A stretch of 43,193 bases of DNA from Dicyema japonicum. Taxonomy: Eukaryota > Animalia > Dicyemida. Positions 5,961 to 43,193 of the stretch are shown one piece after another (within the stretch, counting starts at the first letter, position 1; each line of letters begins with the position of its first letter). The position numbers were made by a program, and so were the translations under genes. The stretch spans positions 1 through 43,193 of the forward strand of contig RDEW01000127.1 of assembly GCA_011109175.1 (NCBI GenBank), read 5' to 3'. The notes under the pieces were generated by a model. That model worked only from the letters and a program-made list of their open reading frames with translations, searched no databases and was not told where the DNA came from.

Positions 5961-6199
5961 TGATTACAATGGCTGCTAAAAAAAACCTCAAAAGAGGCAC
6001 AAAAAAAAGTTATTCATTGGTATCCCTACGCACGGAAATCTTTAGTAAAAGGCGAAAGATTTATACGTTATGTGTAGAAAACAGAACAAAATTTAGATAA
6101 CAGATAACATGATTTATTCGCAAAACCCCAACTAACTAAACAAGGTAAGAGCCATTAACTAAAGAGGAAAGCCAAGATTTGGGGTCGTCTATATCGGGG

Positions 6200-8977: not shown

Positions 8978-9380
8978 CAGACTGTGGAGGTGGAGAAAAA
9001 AAGGAAGTATGACTTTCTTGCAAACGAGATGGTGCAGATGCTTGGTTGCAAGGTCCTCGTTATTCCTACAGTAATGACGTGGGAAGGAATTGCAACAAAG
9101 TACCACAAGGGTTATCTGAAGCAGTTGGGGTAGATAGTAATCTCCAGGCCTATTTACAGTTCACTGTGTTAAAGCGGACCCTAGAGAGACTGACACTGGA
9201 GTATAGGAGGCAGAGCCCTGAGATGCCATATGGGCAGAGGGTTCAATTTGACAAGGCGCTCTCGGAGTTGTTTCTGCAACCAGAATCGAACCTGCCTGAG
9301 GAGGCTGGCGAACAGGCAGGCGAGGAACGTTGTTGATTATTAAATATATTAACTTTTTTATTGTTTGTTAAATAAAGTGT
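8978..9380 (+). mobile_element. 3' fragment of an R4/Dong-like RLE retrotransposon
   Basis: QTVEVEKKRKYDFLANE..IPTVMTWEG..AYLQFTVLKRTLE RLE C-terminus; nearly identical to 24511-24808 (minus); ends in AAATAAAGTG. Confidence 0.85.
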
Positions 9381-9453
9381 CTAAAAATATTTTAATATAA
9401 TTTTGAAACACAACTAAGACAGTGATGTTGTACCAAAATTACCTGAGACAAAA

Positions 9454-9785
9454 TTATTTATTTATTAACCCCGGATACACCGAGAAAAAAGTTAAAATAA
9501 ACAACTAATCGAGTGTACCCAGTATCCACTTCTACAGAAACAGAGTCCATCCGGAATCAGCATAAAGGGTAAGACGTCCATTACATGCAGTTGTGGAAAT
9601 CCCTCCATTGGGTTGGGGAAGAGCAAATGATCTATTTTCATGCCGGCCTGGCACTGGGCGTCACCTAGACAGGTGGATCAGATGACGCCACTCTATTAGG
9701 AAGAGAGAGGAGAAAGACAAGCAAGCAGAAAAATTAAACCAATTAACCACGCAGCACCACATGGCGCCACGAGGCAACTTTTTTT
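9454..9785 (-). mobile_element. 332-bp SINE-like non-autonomous element of the Ingi/Vingi-like family, with 15-bp TSD
   Basis: Exact direct repeat ttacctgagacaaaa at 9439-9453 and 9786-9800; carries the 5' structured motif followed by catttgctcttcccc as in the LINE at 38099; its 3' end resembles the LINE 3' ends (29617-29675, 40865-40938) and ends in a (TAAA)n tail. Confidence 0.8.
9628..9689 (-). ncRNA. HDV-like double-pseudoknot RNA element, copy A
   Basis: GGCGUCA UC UGAUC C ACC UGUCUA GG UGACGCC CA GUGCC AGGCC GGCAU GAAAAUA GAUCA; helix order P1-P2-P3-P3'-P1'-P4-P4'-P2'. Confidence 0.55.
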
Positions 9786-9852
9786 TTACCTGAGACAAAA
9801 ATGAGACAGGATTATTTAAAAATAAATAAAAATTAATAAGTATATTTAATTT

Positions 9853-10445
9853 AAATCAAAAAAGCAGAAAATTGAAAGGAAATTCGATTCAGTTATTATT
9901 GACGAGTCAAAATGTCGAAATCAGAGTTGACACGTCGATTTTGCACACACAGGGTCATTATGCAACCATTGTAAAAAATGCAAGAAAACTGTTGATCATT
10001 TGGCCACTCAGTGTGGTAAAATGCTAAACAGTGATTATCTCCGAAGACATAATAAAGTGGTAAAGTGCATCGATCTTCACTTGTGTCGAGTGTATGGAAT
10101 CAAAAGAAGCAGGAAATTGAAAGGACATTCGGTTCAGTCAATATTGACGACTCAAAATGTCGAAATCAGAGTTGACACGTCAATTATGACAGAAACAAAA
10201 GTCCAATTCAATAAACCTGATATTTTTGTGTACGACAAAATAAAGAAGGAAGTAACCTTAATTGAAGTGGGCATTACTTCACAAGACCGACTACAGCAAG
10301 TTGAATTTGAGAGACCTCACAATTATGACTTGCTTGAAAACGAACTTTCGCTGCTCTACGAATGACAAGTGAAGATTATTCCAGTGGTTTTGACATGGGA
10401 TGGAGTTGTCTCAAGATGTTTCAAGAATCATATGGATAAATTTCA
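9853..10445 (+). mobile_element. Internal fragment of an R4/Dong-like RLE retrotransposon with a misplaced duplicated segment at its 5' junction
   Basis: HLATQCGKMLNSDYLRRHNKVVKCI..KPDIFVYD..IEVGIT..IIPVVLTWDG; 9853-9942 is a diverged copy of about 10099-10184. Confidence 0.85.
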
Positions 10446-20720: not shown

Positions 20721-21299
20721 TCGCTGCTATAGGAACGTTCGTATATAAGAGTGAACGTATAATTTAAACGTATGAACGTCTTGAAAAGCCTGCTTTCCGG
20801 ATTCCAGTTCCAGTTAAAAAATCACCAAGGAAATGACTCCGAGACATATCTCAAAAACTACAGTCGAGGAAAACCAGGTGCAATTTATTAAAAATAAATT
20901 TATTAATATTATTAAAAAAATGATAAATGGGCAAAAGCACACGGAAAAAATATGCCGTAGGACAGCCCGTATGGAACGGTCCGTACTGGAAAGCGACCTG
21001 CAGTGCAATAGGCGGCAATCCAATAGATAAACTGCCTAAATGATAGCAATAAATCACGACCAGGTAAGTAAATTTTTTATAATGTGCTGTCTCCAAAAAT
21101 CTAACAATATTGCTAAAATATTATAGCCAAAAGAATGCTTTTAAAATCAATAGGAATAAAGTAATTTTAGTTTTTAGATTCTTATTCCTTATTTTAATAT
21201 CCCAATAAATTTTCAAAAGTATTTATAAGTTTGAATTATCGCTGTTGTGGTGGTGTGGTGTAATTGAGAAAAAGTAACCAGAAGCGATATGCACAAGAT

Positions 21300-27979: not shown

Positions 27980-29693
27980 CTTTATGTTTCCCCTCGTCAA
28001 CTGGATTGTAAAATATGAACTAAGAAGTGATCACAACCCTATTATGAAGAAAATCAACACTGAAAATAATTTTATAGACAGAATTCAACTTTTTAAAATT
28101 TTGAAAGCGCGGATTGAATCAATTACATCGACATCAATAAGGAAGTATTTTACACATTGGTATTCTCATCAATTGACCAAATAATCAAAACTTTCACGGA
28201 CATTATACTCTAAGCAAGAAAAGTATTTATTCCAATGGGATGCCATCAAACAAGGGATACCTATTATAATACACATAAAAAACACTTATCAGAGAAAGAA
28301 ATAAATTAAAGAGGCAAAAGGATTTATCAAATGACGATTTCCAAAAAATGAAAACCTTAAATATACAAATTAAACAAATTACCCAATTTAGAGTCAAGAA
28401 GCGATGATATCTTCTATATGGAAGAAATCCATTATTTTGACAATTCGGAAGCCAAACAAACCTGCAAACTACCCCTTTTTTTATTGTCCAGTTGTGCGTT
28501 GTCCCGAATTATGTAAAAATTAATCTTAACACGAATCAAAGATATTGTACCAAATCGAGTATTCCAGCATGGACTCCGTGAAAGTCATTCTACTACAACT
28601 CACTTAACAAAATTAACTAATATATATCTGATGGATTCTCCTACCCAAAACCGCATAAAAGGACCACAATGGTTTCAATAGACTTGAGGAAAGTATTCGA
28701 CTCTGTGTTCCGGTCGCTACCTATAGAGAAAATTTCTGACAATCTTATAAACCAAGCATTAAAAGATGGCTGTCGATTTTTCTAAATGGAGGAAGAGGAC
28801 TAGTCATGTCGGACAACAGAAAATCTAAATCCCTTTTATTGCCGAATGGTGTCACTAAAGGTTCACCTCTTTCTCCTTTCCTCTTCAACTTGTACATCGA
28901 TGACCTTCCCACTAATAATGATCCCGATACATTGATACTTTCATACGCAGATGACATTGCTCTTGCGACAAGAGACTCTAACTATGAGAAGGCAGGGACG
29001 AAACTTCAAAGTTACATTGGTATGTTGAAACATTGGCTAACATCAAATCCACTGGAAGTTTCTACAAGAAAGTCATTTATAACAATTTTTTCTACATATA
29101 GAAAAGAGATCATTATACTCTTCCAAAATTAAATTGTTTGAATATGAAATTCCTATGAATAAGTATCCAATAATACTAGGATTAAAGTTGAATACTCTTC
29201 AGCGAACACGGCAATGACGTTATTACATTGGTCAGGAGGACCAACATATTGAAAATTTTGTCCGAGCACCAATCGGGCACAACATCTTCTTACTACAGAA
29301 AATTTACAGACAATACATACTGCCAGTAATTGAATACGCATGTCCTTCTTGGAGCTCGATGATTTCTGAATCGTCGTCTCGAAAATTAGAAGCCGCACAA
29401 CTTTCTGCCTTGAAAATAATTAATAAGAAAACTGTGGATAATGTATTGAATGTTAAAGAACATCTGAAGTCATTTCTACAGTGGGCAATAAAAACTTTCA
29501 CTCTCTATATCTGACTGTCTAGAAAATGCACGGAATCTATAGAGAATAAGACCTTCCCAGTTTTTATCAAATCTGTTGGATCTTCGAGGAACCCGAACGA
29601 GAGCCAGAACCCGAAAACCGGGATCACTTAGTTAGTAGTTAACTTTTAACTTTTCTAATCCGGTGATCTTGGGGTAAAAAAAAGAAAAAAAAA
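27980..29693 (+). mobile_element. Decayed Ingi/Vingi-like element (APE end, internal deletion, RT, 3' UTR, A-rich tail)
   Basis: LRSDHNPI; SIWKKSII; FQHG..STTTHL; SIDLRKVFDSV; GVTKGSPLSPFLFN; SYADDI; YILPVIEYACPSW; 3' motif accgggatcactt shared with 40865. Confidence 0.85.
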
Positions 29694-35990: not shown

Positions 35991-36111
35991 TTGATATATT
36001 ATATTACTCTAATGTACACATATTCAATAAGTTTGAGAATATATTCAACCTTTCAACAACATCATTGTGGGGACTCACTGCAAATGGAAGTGTGCTTTTT
36101 ATCCCTTTATT

Positions 36112-36369
36112 ATTAAATTATTCCAAAGACCAAGGGTAACCAAACTAACCAACTCCTTGATCCTGACTCGTTCCAGCATTCCAGAACTTGTCACCAGGTA
36201 ACGACATTGTCCCCGGGGAATAATTGTTGGATCTACTTTATGCCGTCCAGGCATTGGGCGCTCCTCAGTAAGGTGATCCAGTGACGCCATCGGAAGGAAG
36301 GAAAATACAACTATCCACGTAGCACCAATGACAAACTATCCACGTAGCATTGCATGGCGCCTCGCGCAG
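36112..36369 (-). mobile_element. About 258-bp SINE-like element with structured 5' motif (copy B at 36229-36288)
   Basis: Same architecture as 9454-9785: GGCGCCATG..GTGCTACGTGG, a pyrimidine-rich spacer, then the fold. Candidate degraded TSD tttatccctttatt (36098-36111) / tttatccattcatt (36370-36383), 12/14. Confidence 0.6.
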
Positions 36370-36560
36370 TTTATCCATTCATTCAGTTTTTTAATTATAA
36401 TAAAAATTTATCCATTCATTCAGTTTTTTATTATAATTTATATAAATAAAAATAAAAATTATTTAAATAAATAATTAAAAATCAATTCATATATAAATAA
36501 ATAAATAAATAATAAAAATATATAAATAAATAAATATATAAATAAATAAATAAGAATTTT

Positions 36561-36677
36561 CTCGTGGCGTCATGTGGTTCACCTTTTGTGGTGGCGCTCA
36601 GTGTAATAATACACAAAAAAGAACCATTTGCTCTTCCCCATCCAGACTCTTTATGCCTGGATGGTATACCTCAACTG
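36561..36677 (+). mobile_element. 5' end of the Ingi/Vingi-like element with complete fold (copy C at 36566-36625), cut at a single N
   Basis: 36621-36677 is nearly identical to 38133-38189; the fold is GGCGUCA UGU GGUUC ACC UUUUGU GG UGGCGCU CA GUGU AAUAAU ACAC AAAAAA GAACC. Confidence 0.78.
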
Positions 36678-37027
36678 GNATAAGCAATTAAAATAATTAG
36701 TGATGAGATAATATGGTTAGAAGAATATTTGGTTGTTAGTCTCTAATATTTTACTATGAGAAGTTTGAATCCAGTCAGACACACAACTTAGAGAAACCTG
36801 ACGATAGGTTTATGATGGTTAATTATTATGTTTTTTTTCAGTGTATAAGTTAAATAGCACCTAGCTTCCACATTGCCATCAAGGATATCTTTTTTAAAAT
36901 TAGGAATCTATTCGATATGTTTGGTTTATTAATATATATTGGGAAATTGACTTTTTATTGTGATTCGTAATAATTTACTAAATTTCGTTTGTGAATTTTG
37001 CATTCTATTGCAATTAAGCAAATTTGT

Positions 37028-37203
37028 CAAGTTCACTGCATTTTTCTAGGAGCAACGTTGTAAAATACAGATTTAAATATTAGAGTGCTCCTTTTTTGAC
37101 ACATTTTACTTTTCCCAAGTTCACTGCATTTTTCTAGGAGCAACGTTGTAAAATACAGATTTAAATATTAGAGTGCTCCTTTTTTGACACATTTTACTTT
37201 TCC
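37028..37203. repeat. Exact 88-bp tandem duplication
   Basis: caagttcactgc starts at 37028 and 37116. Confidence 0.95.
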
Positions 37204-37328
37204 ACCTATTTCAAACAATAAATATGGATACTCAAATAAGCACTCAGTAAGCTAAATTTATTATTTTCCTAGGACAAAGTCAAGTACTTATCAACACACA
37301 TAAAGACGATAAAAATTAAATTTCCCTC

Positions 37329-37965
37329 CTAAATATCAAATCTTGTGGACAAAATATAATCAATAATACAATCTGTCGGTTCAGTGGGAATATCCTCAAA
37401 AATTTGTTCATTAAAGGCTAAAGAAAAAGTCCTCGGCCTAATTACGCCTTTCCATGAATTCAAATACCTATCATAATATCCTCGACCTCTCCCCATTCGC
37501 TTACCGCATATAGTAAAGGCAACCCCGGGTACTACAAGGACATCCAAACCTTCTAGTATAAAGCTCACTCAAACCGGAGTCTTCAGCCTCGACTTTGTTT
37601 TCGACTTGTTCATGCTGAAAAAATTTCATTGAACTTTTTCTTAGTGAAGCAAAGTCACTCACTCCATCCAATCTGAGCATCCTCATGGGCCCAATTTCTG
37701 GGCAATAAGGAATGAAGCAGCTCTTGTTATCTCTGAAGGCTGAAGTGATGATTTTATTGGTTGAGACTTCGCTTGGGATGCTCACGTAGAAACCAATATT
37801 CTTGGAGTCCTTGTATAGTTGGGTTTGTAAGAACTAAATTGGATACAGATTTCGGCTTACTTTCTCTTGGACTATATCTGACTGACGTTGTCGTTCGCCC
37901 TTGCTTAGTTTTGCTATGATGTTTAGAGCTTCACGTCTGAAATCAGTTTTAGATAGAGACTGCAT
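37329..37965 (-). CDS. MTHFS: 5-formyltetrahydrofolate cyclo-ligase, 195 aa; exons 37965-37861, 37833-37575, 37552-37329
   Basis: Removing GT-AG introns of 27 nt (37834-37860) and 22 nt (37553-37574) gives an uninterrupted 588-nt CDS with IGFYVSIPSEV, KSCFIP, GLDVLVVPGVAF, RMGRGRGYYDRYL, LAFNEQI. Confidence 0.92.
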
Positions 37966-38221
37966 AACATAACCGCAAATAAACTTAAAATTTTATTTAT
38001 TTTTTAATATGGTTGGCTTAATTATATTAAAAAGAATTATTACTAATATTATAAAATAAGGCTAAGGAACTATTGACTTATTTAAATCAAAATGAAGTGT
38101 AGAATGCGCTCAGTGTAGAATGACATCAAAAAGAACCATTTGCTCTTCCCCACCCAGACTCCTTATGCCTGGATGGTATACCTCAACTGACAACTCGAGA
38201 TGTTGTTTGTTCCCCTGGATT

Positions 38222-38260
38222 CTATTGCTTTCTGGAGATATTGAACAAAACCCTGGACCA
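38222..38260 (+). other. 2A-like (StopGo) ribosomal skipping motif LLLSGDIEQNPGP
   Basis: Exact fit to D(V/I)ExNPG-P, in frame and immediately before the APE start FMQLNANG. Confidence 0.85.
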
Positions 38261-38264
38261 AAAC

Positions 38265-38446
38265 CTTTTGTTTTTATGCAACTCAATGCTAACGGTATAA
38301 AAACAAAGATTCTGGAGTCACGATGTCTATCATCAAAGCACAAGATTGACATTTCCCTTTGTTTTTATGCAACTCAATGCTAACGGTATAAAAACAAAGA
38401 TTCTGGAGTCACGATGTTTATTATCGAAGCACAAGATTGACATTTC
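38265..38446. repeat. 91-bp tandem duplication that frameshifts the APE ORF
   Basis: gtttttatgcaactc starts at 38270 and 38361; copies differ at a few sites. Confidence 0.93.
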
Positions 38447-41019
38447 CCTTATCCAGGAGTCAAAACTTTCTACAAAGAGTACAACCCCACTTTTTCCTAG
38501 ATATATCTCTATCAGAAAAGACCGTATCGGACGTGGTGGCGGCTTACTTACCACTATTAAAGACGGTTTATCTTTCTACGATGTGAGCTCGCAAGTGGAT
38601 GATTTAATTCTACACCACAGGACCGCGGAACAAATTTCTATTGATCCTATTAATGGATCAGAACATCTATTTCTAATCAACATTTACATACCACCGCCGG
38701 ATCTCTAATAACTATGTTCCGAAGCTTGACAAACTACAAGAAATTCGAATTGTGTTACTATGTGGGGATTTCAACACCAAACATCCGCAATGGCTCAATA
38801 TCCAGTCGGCAGACAAGAAGGGGAGTCTAATTATCGACTCTCGAAAAAATGGTGATTCTGAATCACCCGAACATCTTTACAAGGACACCAGTCCAAAGAA
38901 ATGACAACCCAACCTTTCCGACATATCCATTGCTTCCTTTAGGATTTCCCGAAGATTTCATGGAACGTCTCCTACGATTTTCATAGTGATCATAATCCGA
39001 TTATATTAAAACTGAGCCGATTCAATAACTCACATAGAATTAAAGCAACCTTCAAGGTCTACAAGAAAGCTGACTAGTCGAATTTCAAGCTCTTCGTTGA
39101 CCATAACCTAATACATTTTGATCCCACCTCATTTTGCTCCATCGACAAAGCAGTGGACCATCTAAACCATGTAATCCTTCAAGCTGAAAAATTGTTTGTA
39201 CCACGTGCAGTTTAAAAATCTTACAAGCCTACTCTGGACTCGGAGACTTGTCAAACAAAGAAACTCCCTGAAGATGAATAATCTGCAAACCTGATTTGGA
39301 AAATATAAAATGCTTATATCAGATAATTACAAAACTAATCAGAGAAAAGAAAGATGTGGCGTGGAACCGCCTATTATCATCTGTTGGACATATAAAATCC
39401 ACGAGTCTTTTATGGAAAACTATTCTTCAAATCAATTCAAACTTATCAGATGTATAGAATCTTTTTCTGCTCCAAATACTGTGCAAGCTAACAACCCAAT
39501 GAAATATTACGCATCCATGAGTCACATGGACCTCTCGAAATCCCATTCTTGTCACCTTCAGAATTTAATCAATTTTTAATTTGTATTCTAACAAGAACGT
39601 CATCCCATGCAAATGGAAGAACTCATTTATAATACCCCTCCTAAAACTAGGAAAACCGAAAACCTTACCTTCTTCCTACCGTCCAATTTCATTAACTGTT
39701 CATTATCGCGCCTAATGGAGAATCTCGTTCTCTGGAAAATTAATCCCTATTTGCCCGACTGTCACTTTCAACATGGTTTCAGATATGAGCGTTCAACTAC
39801 GACACATTTGACTTTACTGTCTCAATTTATATCAGAAGGGTTCAACGAACTGAAACGCCATTTACGGACAATAGTGGTCTCCCTGGACATTTAAAAGGCG
39901 TTCGATTCTGTCCAGAGAACATTACTCACGAAAAAGGTTTTTGACACTACCATTCAGCCGGCTTTGAAAAGATTTTCTCTCCGGAAGAAAAGACGTGTCT
40001 GTATAGGCCACGCAAGATCGAGGTCCCGTCTCCTACCAAATGGCGTCCCTCGAGGATCCCCCTCTCTCCGGCGTTATTAAATTTATTCCTAAACGATTTA
40101 CCCTGCCCTGGAGGACCAGATTCAATGCTTCTCACTTATGCTGACGACCTAGTCATCGCTAGCAAGAACAAATACGTGGGTATAGCAAAATCAGAGCTTC
40201 AGTCACATATTGACGACCTGGGAGCCTGGTTGAATTTGAATCGTCTCTCCATATCCAGGGATAAATCAACGTATACAATTTTCACCACAGACGAAAAAGA
40301 AATTCATACACTGGATTTGAACATTTATAGACTCTTTAACATTACAAATTCATCCAACTATTCTGGGAGTGACTTTCGACCCTTTGATGACAATTTCTCA
40401 ACATGTGAAGAACGTCATGACAAAGGGTCTCAAGAAACTAAGTATAATCAAACCGCTCTCAAGTCCAGGCCGTCACGGGAATGCGCTGTCTTCTTGTTCA
40501 ATCAACTTCTAAAACCGACGGTAGAGTATGCTTGTGCCTCATGGGCCTATGGAGCTTCAATATCTAATTCATACAAGATCAACTCCCTAGCAGGCAAACT
40601 TTCACGTCTAACAAATTTACCCCCGATCTTTTTCCCCCAATGGTTGACTACGCCGCAATCAAAAATAACGGCTCCAGCTTCATCTGTCTGTATGGTCAAA
40701 AAACAAATCGTTTCTTCCATTCAAGGCTAGAGGCCTCAAATACACGAAACTTGGGGAAAAAAAACCCACCCCTCTTCAAACTCTAATGAAATCTGATCGT
40801 CATCTATTCAGGAAAGCCGTACTCTGAAGGAACATAGGAAAAACCTCTCGATCCTGTTGAGGCGTACCGGGATCACTTTATTAGTTGGTTTACTCCTTTT
40901 TTCTTAGTGTTCCCTTTTCGGGGTTATTAAATAAATAAAAATCAAAACGAAGTACTATGTGAATATTATTCATAAAGCATTTTCAAAACACCTGGATGTT
41001 CATTCTGGCAATGGTTGAA

Positions 41020-42080
41020 GGAATAAATGTCCCGACATTACTATCTTCAACCCTTCAATGGTGCAATCAGTAATTAGGAAAATGAATAACTCGTCTCCCC
41101 GCGGTTCAGATGACATCTCTATTCTCGAACTGAATCACCTGGGTCTTTCCGCGACAGCCGCAATGACATAAATTTTCAACTTCTCAATTAACGAGAACAA
41201 GATTCCGTCAATATAAGAGAAATCTCTGATACACCCTGTCCTGAAGAAAAACAAACCATCAAACTGCCTGTCCTCCTACCGACCGGTATCCATCATCTGC
41301 GCCTTATCACGAGTGTTAGAAAAACTGGTCCTTCTCAAGATGCGTCCTTTCATAACTCTACCATCTTTTCAACATGGATTCCGCGAAGGACACTCAACAA
41401 CAACTCATCTAACAAAACTGGTTAAATTAATCTTGGACGGCCTGAATACCCCAAATCCACACGAGAATCGTGCTGGTCTCAGTGGATGTGGAGAAGGCTT
41501 TTGACTCAATATCCTTGAAGATCCTTACAGCAAAAATTTTTACGACGTCGATCTACCCTAAGTTCAAATCATGTTTGGCTAACTTCATCAACGGTCAAAT
41601 GGGCCAAGTAGTGGCAAACAACCAAAAATCAAAACAGCGATACTTTCCAAATGGAGTTCCACAAGGATTCTTCTATCGTATACGGATGATCTAGTGGTCG
41701 CAGTGAAACATTGAAGAATCGAGGAGGCGACACGATCCATGCAAGACCTACTAAACCAGAAGTGTTTTTGGTTCCTGAAGAACCGTCCGAATATATCAAC
41801 AGAAAATTCACATGTAATGACGTTCACCTCAGCACGAAAATAATTACGGGCAGCACCACGAGTAACATTATATGACTCCCCGCTTCCCATTAAAAAAACC
41901 TTTTAAATCCTTGGAGTCATCCTGGATCCTCTACTCACATTTACCTATCAAGTGGACCTAGTAACCGCGAGAATCCAAAAGAAAATTGGAATCCTCAAAT
42001 CGTTCACTCACTCTCCAGTATCTTTAGAGCTTATATACAAACAATTTGTTCTACCTAGAATCGAGTAAGCCTGTGCTGCA
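41020..42080 (+). mobile_element. Second decayed Ingi/Vingi-like RT segment with deletion after the QG box
   Basis: SYRPVSI, FQHGFREGHSTTTHL, VDVEKAFDSI, GVPQG joined almost directly to YTDDLV, LGVILDP, YKQFVLPRIE*AC. Confidence 0.85.
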
Positions 42081-42384
42081 GTTCAAAAAATATTTTTTCA
42101 CTGAAAAAGTATTAAAAATATTGTCTTTAATTCTAGACCCTCTGTTATTAACAATATTTTGTGGGTTAAATTTTGGTCAAAGATTTCTGTTCCTTATCAT
42201 CCCTTGTATCAGTAGAATAGCATAATGTGATAAACATGCAAGGGCTGCTAGAAAAAGGAGCATTTGGTATTCTCTATTCAACAAGGATTCCCATGAGTAC
42301 AAAGTAAAGATAGAATCTTTCCTTTCGCTGGTGCAAATTGGGATTGTGAGATATTAGAAGATCATCGCGTCTGTGACAGTAGGA

Positions 42385-42435
42385 ACTGAATACAATTAAT
42401 TATTAACTTCTTTCTCGGTGATCCGAGGGTTTTAA
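42385..42435 (+). repeat. Detached 3'-end motif of the Ingi/Vingi-like family
   Basis: ttaacttctttctcggtgatccgagggtt resembles ttaacttttttctcggtgtatccggggtt (SINE 3' end) and the 29640-29675 end. Confidence 0.45.
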
Positions 42436-43193
42436 TTCGACTCATCAACTTTGATTTCTAATTTTATATTTTAGCAGTTTAATTTTGTTCAAACTCATAA
42501 AGATGGAAAATGAGATAACACTGAATTAGAATTACGTCACATGATCGCATCAAACAAATTGAGGTTAGATGTGTCACTATTATTACCTTCTCTTAAGAAA
42601 ATTATCTTTATTACAATTCACAAATGATGATTATTGTCCTGGAACATTCCGAAGTTGTCCCAAACATACATGATTAAGTAAAAATAACTTACATCAAATC
42701 AGACATATTGAATAAATCTATAAGGAGTTTGTCCCTAAACACAAACATGGAATCAAAATTACTGATGAAAGTCACCAATGTGTACTTGTGCAACTGACGT
42801 GTGGTAGCATGAAACACATCCTAGATTGGAAAAGGATTCGGAAAGAAACGAGACGACTCACTTGAATATAGAGAAATGGGAATAGGATGAGTGGGCTTAT
42901 AGTTTTTGAAAGTCTCTGTCCTTGTAACAAAGGTAAAGAAAGTGACCAAAGCGTTTATTATCGAATCCAATCAGATAACTATTAGAGAATATTATTAAGG
43001 AAATCAAAAGATAATGTAAACAGAATTTCACGAAAATGTAAATAATAAAACCACCATAACTAATTCTATAAAAAACTATAACTTACGATCTCTGAATGAT
43101 TCTGTTGCATGTATTATTGAAATGTACTCAAAAATAGAAAAATTATAATTTTTAAGAAAATAATAAAAACATAAAACAAATTGGTGACTTACA

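Follow-up and report, generated by a model that had tools for sequence, protein, structure and literature searches.

In the eel, the LINE UnaL2 and its partner UnaSINE1 form a system of the stringent type, in which the partner is recognised via a conserved 3' stem-loop and a short tandem-repeat tail common to both. SINEs of the UnaSINE1 type have tRNA-derived pol III heads, and only their 3' end is shared with the LINE. In trypanosomatids, the target-site duplications of the RIME/ingi and NARTc/L1Tc pairs are 12 bp long. The short members of these pairs (and their SIDER relatives) are non-coding elements that carry both ends of a single-ORF, 2A-bearing LINE, share with it a 5' end that has an HDV-ribozyme-type RNA fold (Pr77/L1TcRz), and have duplications of a fixed, fairly long size (PMC3185411, PMC3383444, PMC4035085, PMC3708506). 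Vingi elements of hedgehog and Anolis have a single ORF of ~1,000 aa with an APE endonuclease and RT, and no RNase H, and are accompanied by many short derivatives that keep both termini (PMC5786205, PMC3708506, PMC13708176). The RTE-derived Bov-A, WALLSI3, and RTE-N, and the R2-derived SIDEs, retain nothing of a single-ORF LINE but its 5' and 3' parts, and their parent clades have 5' self-cleaving ribozymes (PMC5786205). To date, RTE, Ingi, Vingi, and R2 are the only groups from which bipartite ORF-less non-autonomous LINEs have been reported (PMC5786205). Both 5' and 3' UTRs are also present in the trans templates of the Vingi and RTE gene-writing systems (PMC13708176).

Here we describe a partnership of this kind from a dicyemid. 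Dicyema japonicum is a parasite of the octopus kidney. Its 67.5-Mb genome (377 scaffolds, 36.7% GC) has introns of 38 bp on average and consists of 49% repeats, which the genome paper left unclassified beyond "LINE-1 ORF2-like" (PMC6736024). No description of dicyemid LINE or SINE families was found in the literature searched. The stretch of DNA analysed, hereafter the window, is the 43,193-nt contig RDEW01000127.1 of assembly GCA_011109175.1, and genome searches were made against an assembly of 67,542,437 bases in 377 contigs.

Results and Discussion

A preliminary description of the window had reported a 332-bp element with an exact 15-bp target-site duplication. We confirmed this element, here called SINE A, as a minus-strand copy bracketed by the direct repeat TTACCTGAGACAAAA on both sides (Table 1). 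The 5' fold, the catttgctcttcccc motif, the LINE-like 3' end, and the (TAAA)n-type tail that had been ascribed to it are all present as well. Eight bases at its 5' junction (9778-9785, A8 on the element strand) lie outside the SINE A family, as other copies end at 9777, and are filler.

Table 1. Location of SINE A, SINE B, LINE copies, and their component parts in the 43,193-nt window
Feature	Position	Strand	Details
SINE A copy	9454..9785	-	332 bp; bipartite non-autonomous LINE derivative; family sequence = 9454-9777
Target-site duplication adjoining SINE A 3' tail	9439..9453	.	15/15 identity with 9786-9800
Target-site duplication adjoining SINE A 5' end	9786..9800	.	partner of 9439-9453
SINE A, (TAAA)n-type tail AATAAATAAATAA	9454..9466	-	LINE copies have the same kind of tail
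SINE A, LINE 3'-end module	9457..9545	-	last ~50 nt of ORF + 3' UTR; consensus 233-321; 74-78% to last 70-97 nt of every LINE-A copy
SINE A, 3' terminal stem-loop	9471..9522	-	10-11 bp stem, ~30-nt loop, then GGGGTTAATAAA; MFE -18.8 kcal/mol, z = -4.96
SINE A, LINE 5' UTR + first codons module	9583..9691	-	HDV-topology fold + CATTTGCTCTTCCCC; consensus 87-195; 74-75% to LINE-A 1-83 and beyond
SINE A, leader, 86 nt	9692..9775	-	consensus 1-86; first ~25 nt repeat the LINE 5'-terminal motif CGTGGCGYCATGTGGT; contains T5 run
SINE B copy	36111..36366	-	leader, fold, 3' stem-loop, AT-rich tail; family limits = query positions 7-262
Complete LINE-A 5' end	36558..36678	+	broken off by assembly gap (N at 36679)
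LINE-A target-site duplication, 5' copy	38084..38098	.	14/15 vs 40939-40953
LINE-A copy, 2.84 kb	38099..40938	+	Exo_endo_phos_2, RVT_1
LINE-A, single-ORF start through 2A-like peptide	38165..38260	+	ATG 38165 in frame with GDIEQNPGP 38234-38260 (…LLLSGDIEQNPGP)
LINE-A target-site duplication, 3' copy	40939..40953	.	14/15 vs 38084-38098
5'-truncated copy of second, related LINE family	41046..42436	+	tblastn RT match 41046-42080

The window copy sits among other repeats, which take up its left side from 9379 outward and the greater part of its right flank. SINE A, its junction, and its right flank occur in three places at ~92% identity (window 9425-9960, on contig C32; C212:713643-714189; C348:180477-180686), of which only C212 also has the left flank, C348 having the right flank alone. 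This copy was therefore also multiplied by segmental duplication after it had inserted. An empty-site allele, which had been suggested as a check on the insertion, was not found when the two flanks were searched separately; their unique parts occur only in filled copies. The neighbour on the left (window ~9046-9379, plus strand) is the 3' end of a high-copy element with an ORF to 9336 and then an AT-rich end at ~9379; a genome search gave 543 candidates for it, 92-98% identical and mostly at 97%. The right flank, starting ~60 nt away, holds two repeated modules of ~96-100 nt and 72 nt (9848-10010 and 10098-10188), which elsewhere in the genome are paired ~78 nt apart in reversed order (146 candidates) and belong to an unclassified repeat family.

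A similarity search of the genome with the window copy returned at least 1,715 first-look candidates for SINE A. The copies that were scored were all full length (40/40; query 9-332), 91-94% identical to the window copy, and alike in their internal junction. From 30 aligned copies we derived a consensus of 321 nt, from which divergence is 0.9-4.7% (mean 2.5%), the window copy standing at 4.7%. An exact 21-mer from the 3' stem of SINE A occurred at 511 sites (260 forward and 251 reverse) scattered over many contigs, compared with 0 for the reversed control. Since 18 of the 30 aligned copies carry this 21-mer, the family is estimated to number about one to two thousand copies. No ORF exceeds 61 aa, the longest stop-free stretch of the consensus in six frames, and the LINE start codon is deleted. 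SINE A is a young, abundant non-coding retroposon family, and since the internal layout is common to all copies, the short form has multiplied as a unit.

Target-site duplications were sought at 29 independent SINE A insertions as the best repeat between the 55 nt upstream and the first bases past the tail. A score of 9 or more was reached at 16 of the 29 loci, as against 3.6% of 812 mismatched flank pairs, and a score of 12 or more at 10 loci, as against 0.1% of the mismatched pairs. The duplications were 9-17 bp long (median 13-14), plus one of 26 bp, while 13 insertions had no convincing duplication within the 55 nt searched. LINE-A, the LINE described below, had duplications of 14 and 13/14 bp in full-length copies and 14/15 bp in the window copy. 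Given these matching lengths (~14-15 bp), SINE A and LINE-A share an integration footprint. The genome-wide check thus returned what had been predicted of the family, namely copies with an identical internal breakpoint, which number in the hundreds, and with duplications of their own, in 16/29.

The upstream duplication is separated from the SINE A 5' end by 3 to ~40 extra bases. Some of these 5' extensions are common to subsets of copies (two loci have the 17-nt GATTAATGTTGTGGCCG, two have ATTTTCGATTTGCC, and four have ATAAGGCC), suggesting that transcripts may have started in the flanks of several source copies. In two 5' junctions (L019 and L014), the extra bases include short sequences repeated from the 5' part of the element itself (GTGGTGCTGCGT and GCCGCG), in line with template switching as reverse transcription comes to an end. 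One SINE A copy (L025:1487-1872) has landed within the coding sequence of a different LINE family; its duplication matches at 13/14, and its 5' junction holds 36 additional bases. The protein alignment of the interrupted LINE ends at residue 426 and restarts at residue 425 past the insert, and its comparison with the uninterrupted protein serves as a filled-site comparison. Together, the shared junction, the individual duplications, and this copy inside another LINE's frame uphold the earlier proposal that SINE A was retrotransposed as a unit and was not formed by deletion in place.

A second short element in the window, SINE B, had been noted with a candidate 14-bp duplication. It is indeed a real family of its own, for which the genome search gave 841 candidates at 84-94% identity, and it shares the leader motif of SINE A. 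However, its duplication is doubtful, as it matches at 12/14, overlaps the tail, and has a score that is reached by ~10% of mismatched flank pairs. A repeat of ~24 nt, TTTATCCATTCATTCAGTTTTTTA, occurs twice at 36371-36430, abutting the 5' end of SINE B, and complicates the reading of a duplication there. Elsewhere in the window are a U5 snRNA gene (5983-6089, minus strand; 78.6 bits, above the gathering score) and a U1-like sequence (20926-21071, minus strand; 45.7 bits, under the gathering score of 69.5).

Both ends of SINE A are related to those of LINE-A. At the 5' side, SINE A 87-169 is 74-75% identical to LINE-A 1-83 in every full-length copy, and a weaker match, from which the ATG is deleted, continues to ~195. 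At the 3' side, SINE A 233/258-321 matches the last 70-97 nt of LINE-A at 74-78% and leads into the same GGGGTTA(A/T)TAAA and (TAAA)n tail; the match of 258-321 to the last 70 nt is 77-78% (E about 1e-7 in a 275-kb set). Since the LINE stop codon sits in the loop of the terminal hairpin, this 3' part spans the last ~50 coding bases and the short 3' UTR. The 86-nt leader has no LINE-A counterpart beyond its first ~25 nt, and three other candidate LINE 5' ends gave only noise-level matches to it; ~35 nt in the middle of SINE A are likewise without an assigned LINE counterpart. The proposed origin by internal deletion from a LINE therefore stands as far as the sharing of both ends goes, but removing the interior of the window's LINE family would not by itself yield SINE A, whose ends are only 74-78% identical to that family and which has the extra leader.

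The 2.84-kb LINE in the window, a copy of LINE-A, has the reported 15-bp target-site duplication (14/15), with AAATCAAAATGAAGT and AAATCAAAACGAAGT as its flanks. This copy is dead, being 5'-truncated by ~35 nt, with a deletion of ~150 bp and many stop codons, and its N-terminal coding region contains a 96-bp tandem duplication (38264-38359 and 38355-38450, 95.8% identity). Full-length LINE-A is ~2,960 bp long, starts with (GAATT)TTCTCGTGGCGTCATGTGG, and has a 5' UTR of ~100 nt that contains the conserved fold and CATTTGCTCTTCCCC. Since the endonuclease follows directly after the 2A peptide, LINE-A has a single ORF and no ORF1. Its protein matches Exo_endo_phos_2 and RVT_1 in Pfam, and the LINE-A pieces had no RNase_H match in Pfam. 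Across the whole 67.5-Mb assembly, the RNase H profile PF00075 had one match (C321:356411-356839), and no such domain was detectable in the genome's many LINEs. The second LINE family in the window matches SINE A at its 3' end at 74.7% over 79 nt and shares the exact sequence TTAACTTCTTTCTCGGTG. A reverse-transcriptase fragment of a related LINE lies at window 28472-29108 (plus strand). The right part of the window (36105-41000), with SINE B, LINE-A, and the same flanks, recurs at 98-99% identity at C68:373987-377365 and C372:26420-29162, either as haplotypes that were left uncollapsed or through very recent duplication. In the C68 LINE, identity drops to 89% over the 5' half, suggesting that copies have recombined or undergone conversion.

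To place LINE-A among LINEs, its protein was compared with others. The closest homologs outside the genome are 38-39% identical, and several of the closest have N-terminal NPGP motifs. Recent horizontal transfer was rejected on account of this low identity of the best outside protein, and contamination by the octopus host was rejected since the elements are spread over many scaffolds of the D. japonicum assembly. In a tree of 52 unlabelled RT domains, LINE-A fell into a clade of 22 members (SH-aLRT 99) that includes 2A-bearing members, and the nearest branch outside this clade is an RNase H-bearing protein (support 91). Of the traits of the Ingi type, the single ORF and the N-terminal 2A are present in LINE-A and the RNase H after the RT is absent. 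The absence of RNase H and the ORF of ~1,000 aa in the relatives of LINE-A fit Vingi, which is Ingi-like without RNase H (PMC13708176), although many other clades lack RNase H too. These features are compatible with a Vingi-like position, and we put the chance that LINE-A belongs to the Ingi/Vingi group at about one half.

Both ends of the elements have conserved RNA folds. In single-sequence folding, all eight 3' ends that were folded (two from SINE A, one each from SINE B, LINE-A, and two other LINE families, and two from further elements) formed a terminal hairpin directly before GGGGTTAATAAA(TAAA)n, with z = -2.1 to -5.5. Equivalent hairpins are found in SINE A, SINE B, and at least four LINE families, with stems that differ in sequence while complementarity is kept (CUGGAUACAC/GUGUAUCCGG, UGGGAUCACC/GGUGAUCCCG, and CCGGCUUC/GAAGCCGG). 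This is the pattern to be expected if the reverse transcriptase recognises the 3' structure together with the repeat tail. In the predicted 5' fold, three helices show 92% pairing over LINE-A and four short families, compared with 32-56% when the partners are slid; two pairs are changed on both sides, and the covariation score was reached by 5/500 shuffles. The fold is retained in the non-coding short elements though it lies 86 nt inside them, with the leader and upstream bases also kept. Since copies retain the leader, cutting at the 5' edge of the fold is not what is seen.

Taken together, we consider it very probable that SINE A descends from a single-ORF LINE with a 2A peptide, an APE endonuclease, and RT, and without RNase H, by near-total loss of the coding region, and that it is copied by LINE proteins in trans. 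It would have kept ~110 nt of the LINE 5' UTR and first codons, with the fold, and ~90-100 nt of the last codons and 3' UTR. We infer that SINE A RNA would arise through RNA polymerase II transcription or through read-in from adjacent DNA, and that a LINE protein of the same superfamily would bind its 3' stem-loop and tail in trans. The protein would then nick the target with a stagger of ~14-15 bp and copy the RNA by target-primed reverse transcription, which would account for the duplications of 9-17 bp and for the additional bases, from a few to some tens, at 5' junctions. The 5' fold may serve in recognition or integration. Counted against this explanation are the leader, most of which has no LINE-A counterpart, the negative search for an empty site, the spread of the window copy by segmental duplication, the 13/29 insertions with no convincing duplication, and the fact that the ends of SINE A are just ~75% identical to LINE-A even though the short family is young.

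This last point bears on which LINE drives SINE A. The partnership could be real with a driver other than LINE-A, namely a related LINE family with an intact frame of ~1,000 aa, in which case SINE A would come from that family or from an extinct one; we regard the chances of this as evenly balanced. SINE A copies lie ~2.5% from their consensus, whereas LINE-A copies are ~10% apart and none of those scored has an intact frame. A protein search of the genome gave 8,641 candidates, and among these are several related families, 40-50% identical to LINE-A in amino-acid sequence, that have uninterrupted frames of 929-1,108 aa. Moreover, the sampled LINE 3' ends all match SINE A about equally (74-78%). 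Nevertheless, LINE-A gave the longest and best matches at both ends among the LINE ends compared, which came from families other than those with intact frames.

A driver from an unrelated LINE clade such as RTE, with the resemblance to the 2A-type LINE reflecting a shared acquired module, is very unlikely: bipartite derivatives and SINE bodies derived from a 5' UTR are best known from RTE (PMC5786205), yet both ends, the type of tail, and the duplication length of the short elements match the 2A-type LINE superfamily, in comparisons that covered ends of that superfamily alone. Still less credible is a classical SINE, transcribed by pol III from a tRNA, 5S, or 7SL head and with a borrowed LINE tail. 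Although the first bases of SINE A, TGGCGCCATGTGG, are faintly A box-like, its terminal motif is also found at the LINE's own 5' end, the T5 run at consensus 43-47 would terminate pol III, and the short elements showed no similarity to tRNA (ARAGORN) or to tRNA, 5S, 7SL, or snRNA (Rfam, E up to 1). The label SINE, given in the preliminary description, is accordingly not appropriate. Since there is no pol III head, the correct term is "non-autonomous LINE", and we keep SINE A as a family name. Finally, deletion in place followed by segmental duplication, suggested by the triplication of the window copy with its right flank, can be dismissed for the family, since the other 28 sampled copies have unrelated flanks, 16/29 have duplications of their own, and the exact 21-mer sites are spread over many contigs on both strands.

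By Kojima's terminology, SINE A counts as a bipartite ORF-less non-autonomous LINE: it is non-coding, it has a LINE 5' part and a LINE 3' part with tail, and its many copies share one junction and have duplications of LINE length. Among known systems, RIME/ingi and NARTc/L1Tc resemble it in their short non-coding elements with both ends of a single-ORF, 2A-bearing LINE, in the HDV-type fold of the shared 5' end, and in fairly long duplications; indeed, the commonest 2A core of L1Tc, DIEQNPGP, is identical to that of LINE-A. In contrast to the trypanosomatid systems, the dicyemid LINE lacks RNase H, the tail is (TAAA)n preceded by a 3' stem-loop instead of poly(A), the duplications are ~14-15 bp, and the host is an animal. 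The dicyemid fold also differs in lying 86 nt inside the short element with the upstream bases kept, and 5'-end cleavage is not seen. The Vingi systems are similar in their ORF and domains, in their many short derivatives with both termini, and in the use of both UTRs in trans templates, but no 2A peptide has been reported for Vingi and LINE-A has one. The RTE- and R2-derived elements are comparable in consisting of the two ends of a single-ORF LINE. Unlike RTE, however, the dicyemid endonuclease matches Exo_endo_phos_2, and the closest homologs form a 2A-bearing group beside an RNase H-bearing protein; R2 has a different endonuclease and is site-specific. With eel UnaL2/UnaSINE1, the dicyemid system has in common the 3' stem-loop and tandem-repeat tail shared by LINE and short element, but the dicyemid short element also shares the 5' UTR and is without a pol III head. 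A partnership between a LINE and a non-autonomous LINE is well supported here, as an ordinary case of a known kind and mechanism that is newly described for a dicyemid.

Kojima has asked why ORF-less two-ended derivatives arise only in the few LINE clades that also carry 5' ribozymes (PMC5786205). It is possible, though on balance doubtful, that the internal HDV-topology fold, instead of cutting the 5' end as a ribozyme, gives the LINE protein a second signal for recognition or integration, and that this LINE group may be a fifth clade making two-ended derivatives, beyond RTE, Ingi, Vingi, and R2. If true, such a signal would explain why two-ended ORF-less derivatives arise almost only in LINE clades with such 5' folds. 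The dicyemid system is a natural test case for this question, as the fold is kept by compensating changes although it is internal and apparently non-cutting, and the system is relevant to the design of retrotransposon gene writers in which both UTRs are required (PMC13708176). For D. japonicum itself, these results define one of the main repeat systems in a very small, half-repeat genome, in which a 2A-type LINE superfamily is accompanied by several short two-ended dependants.
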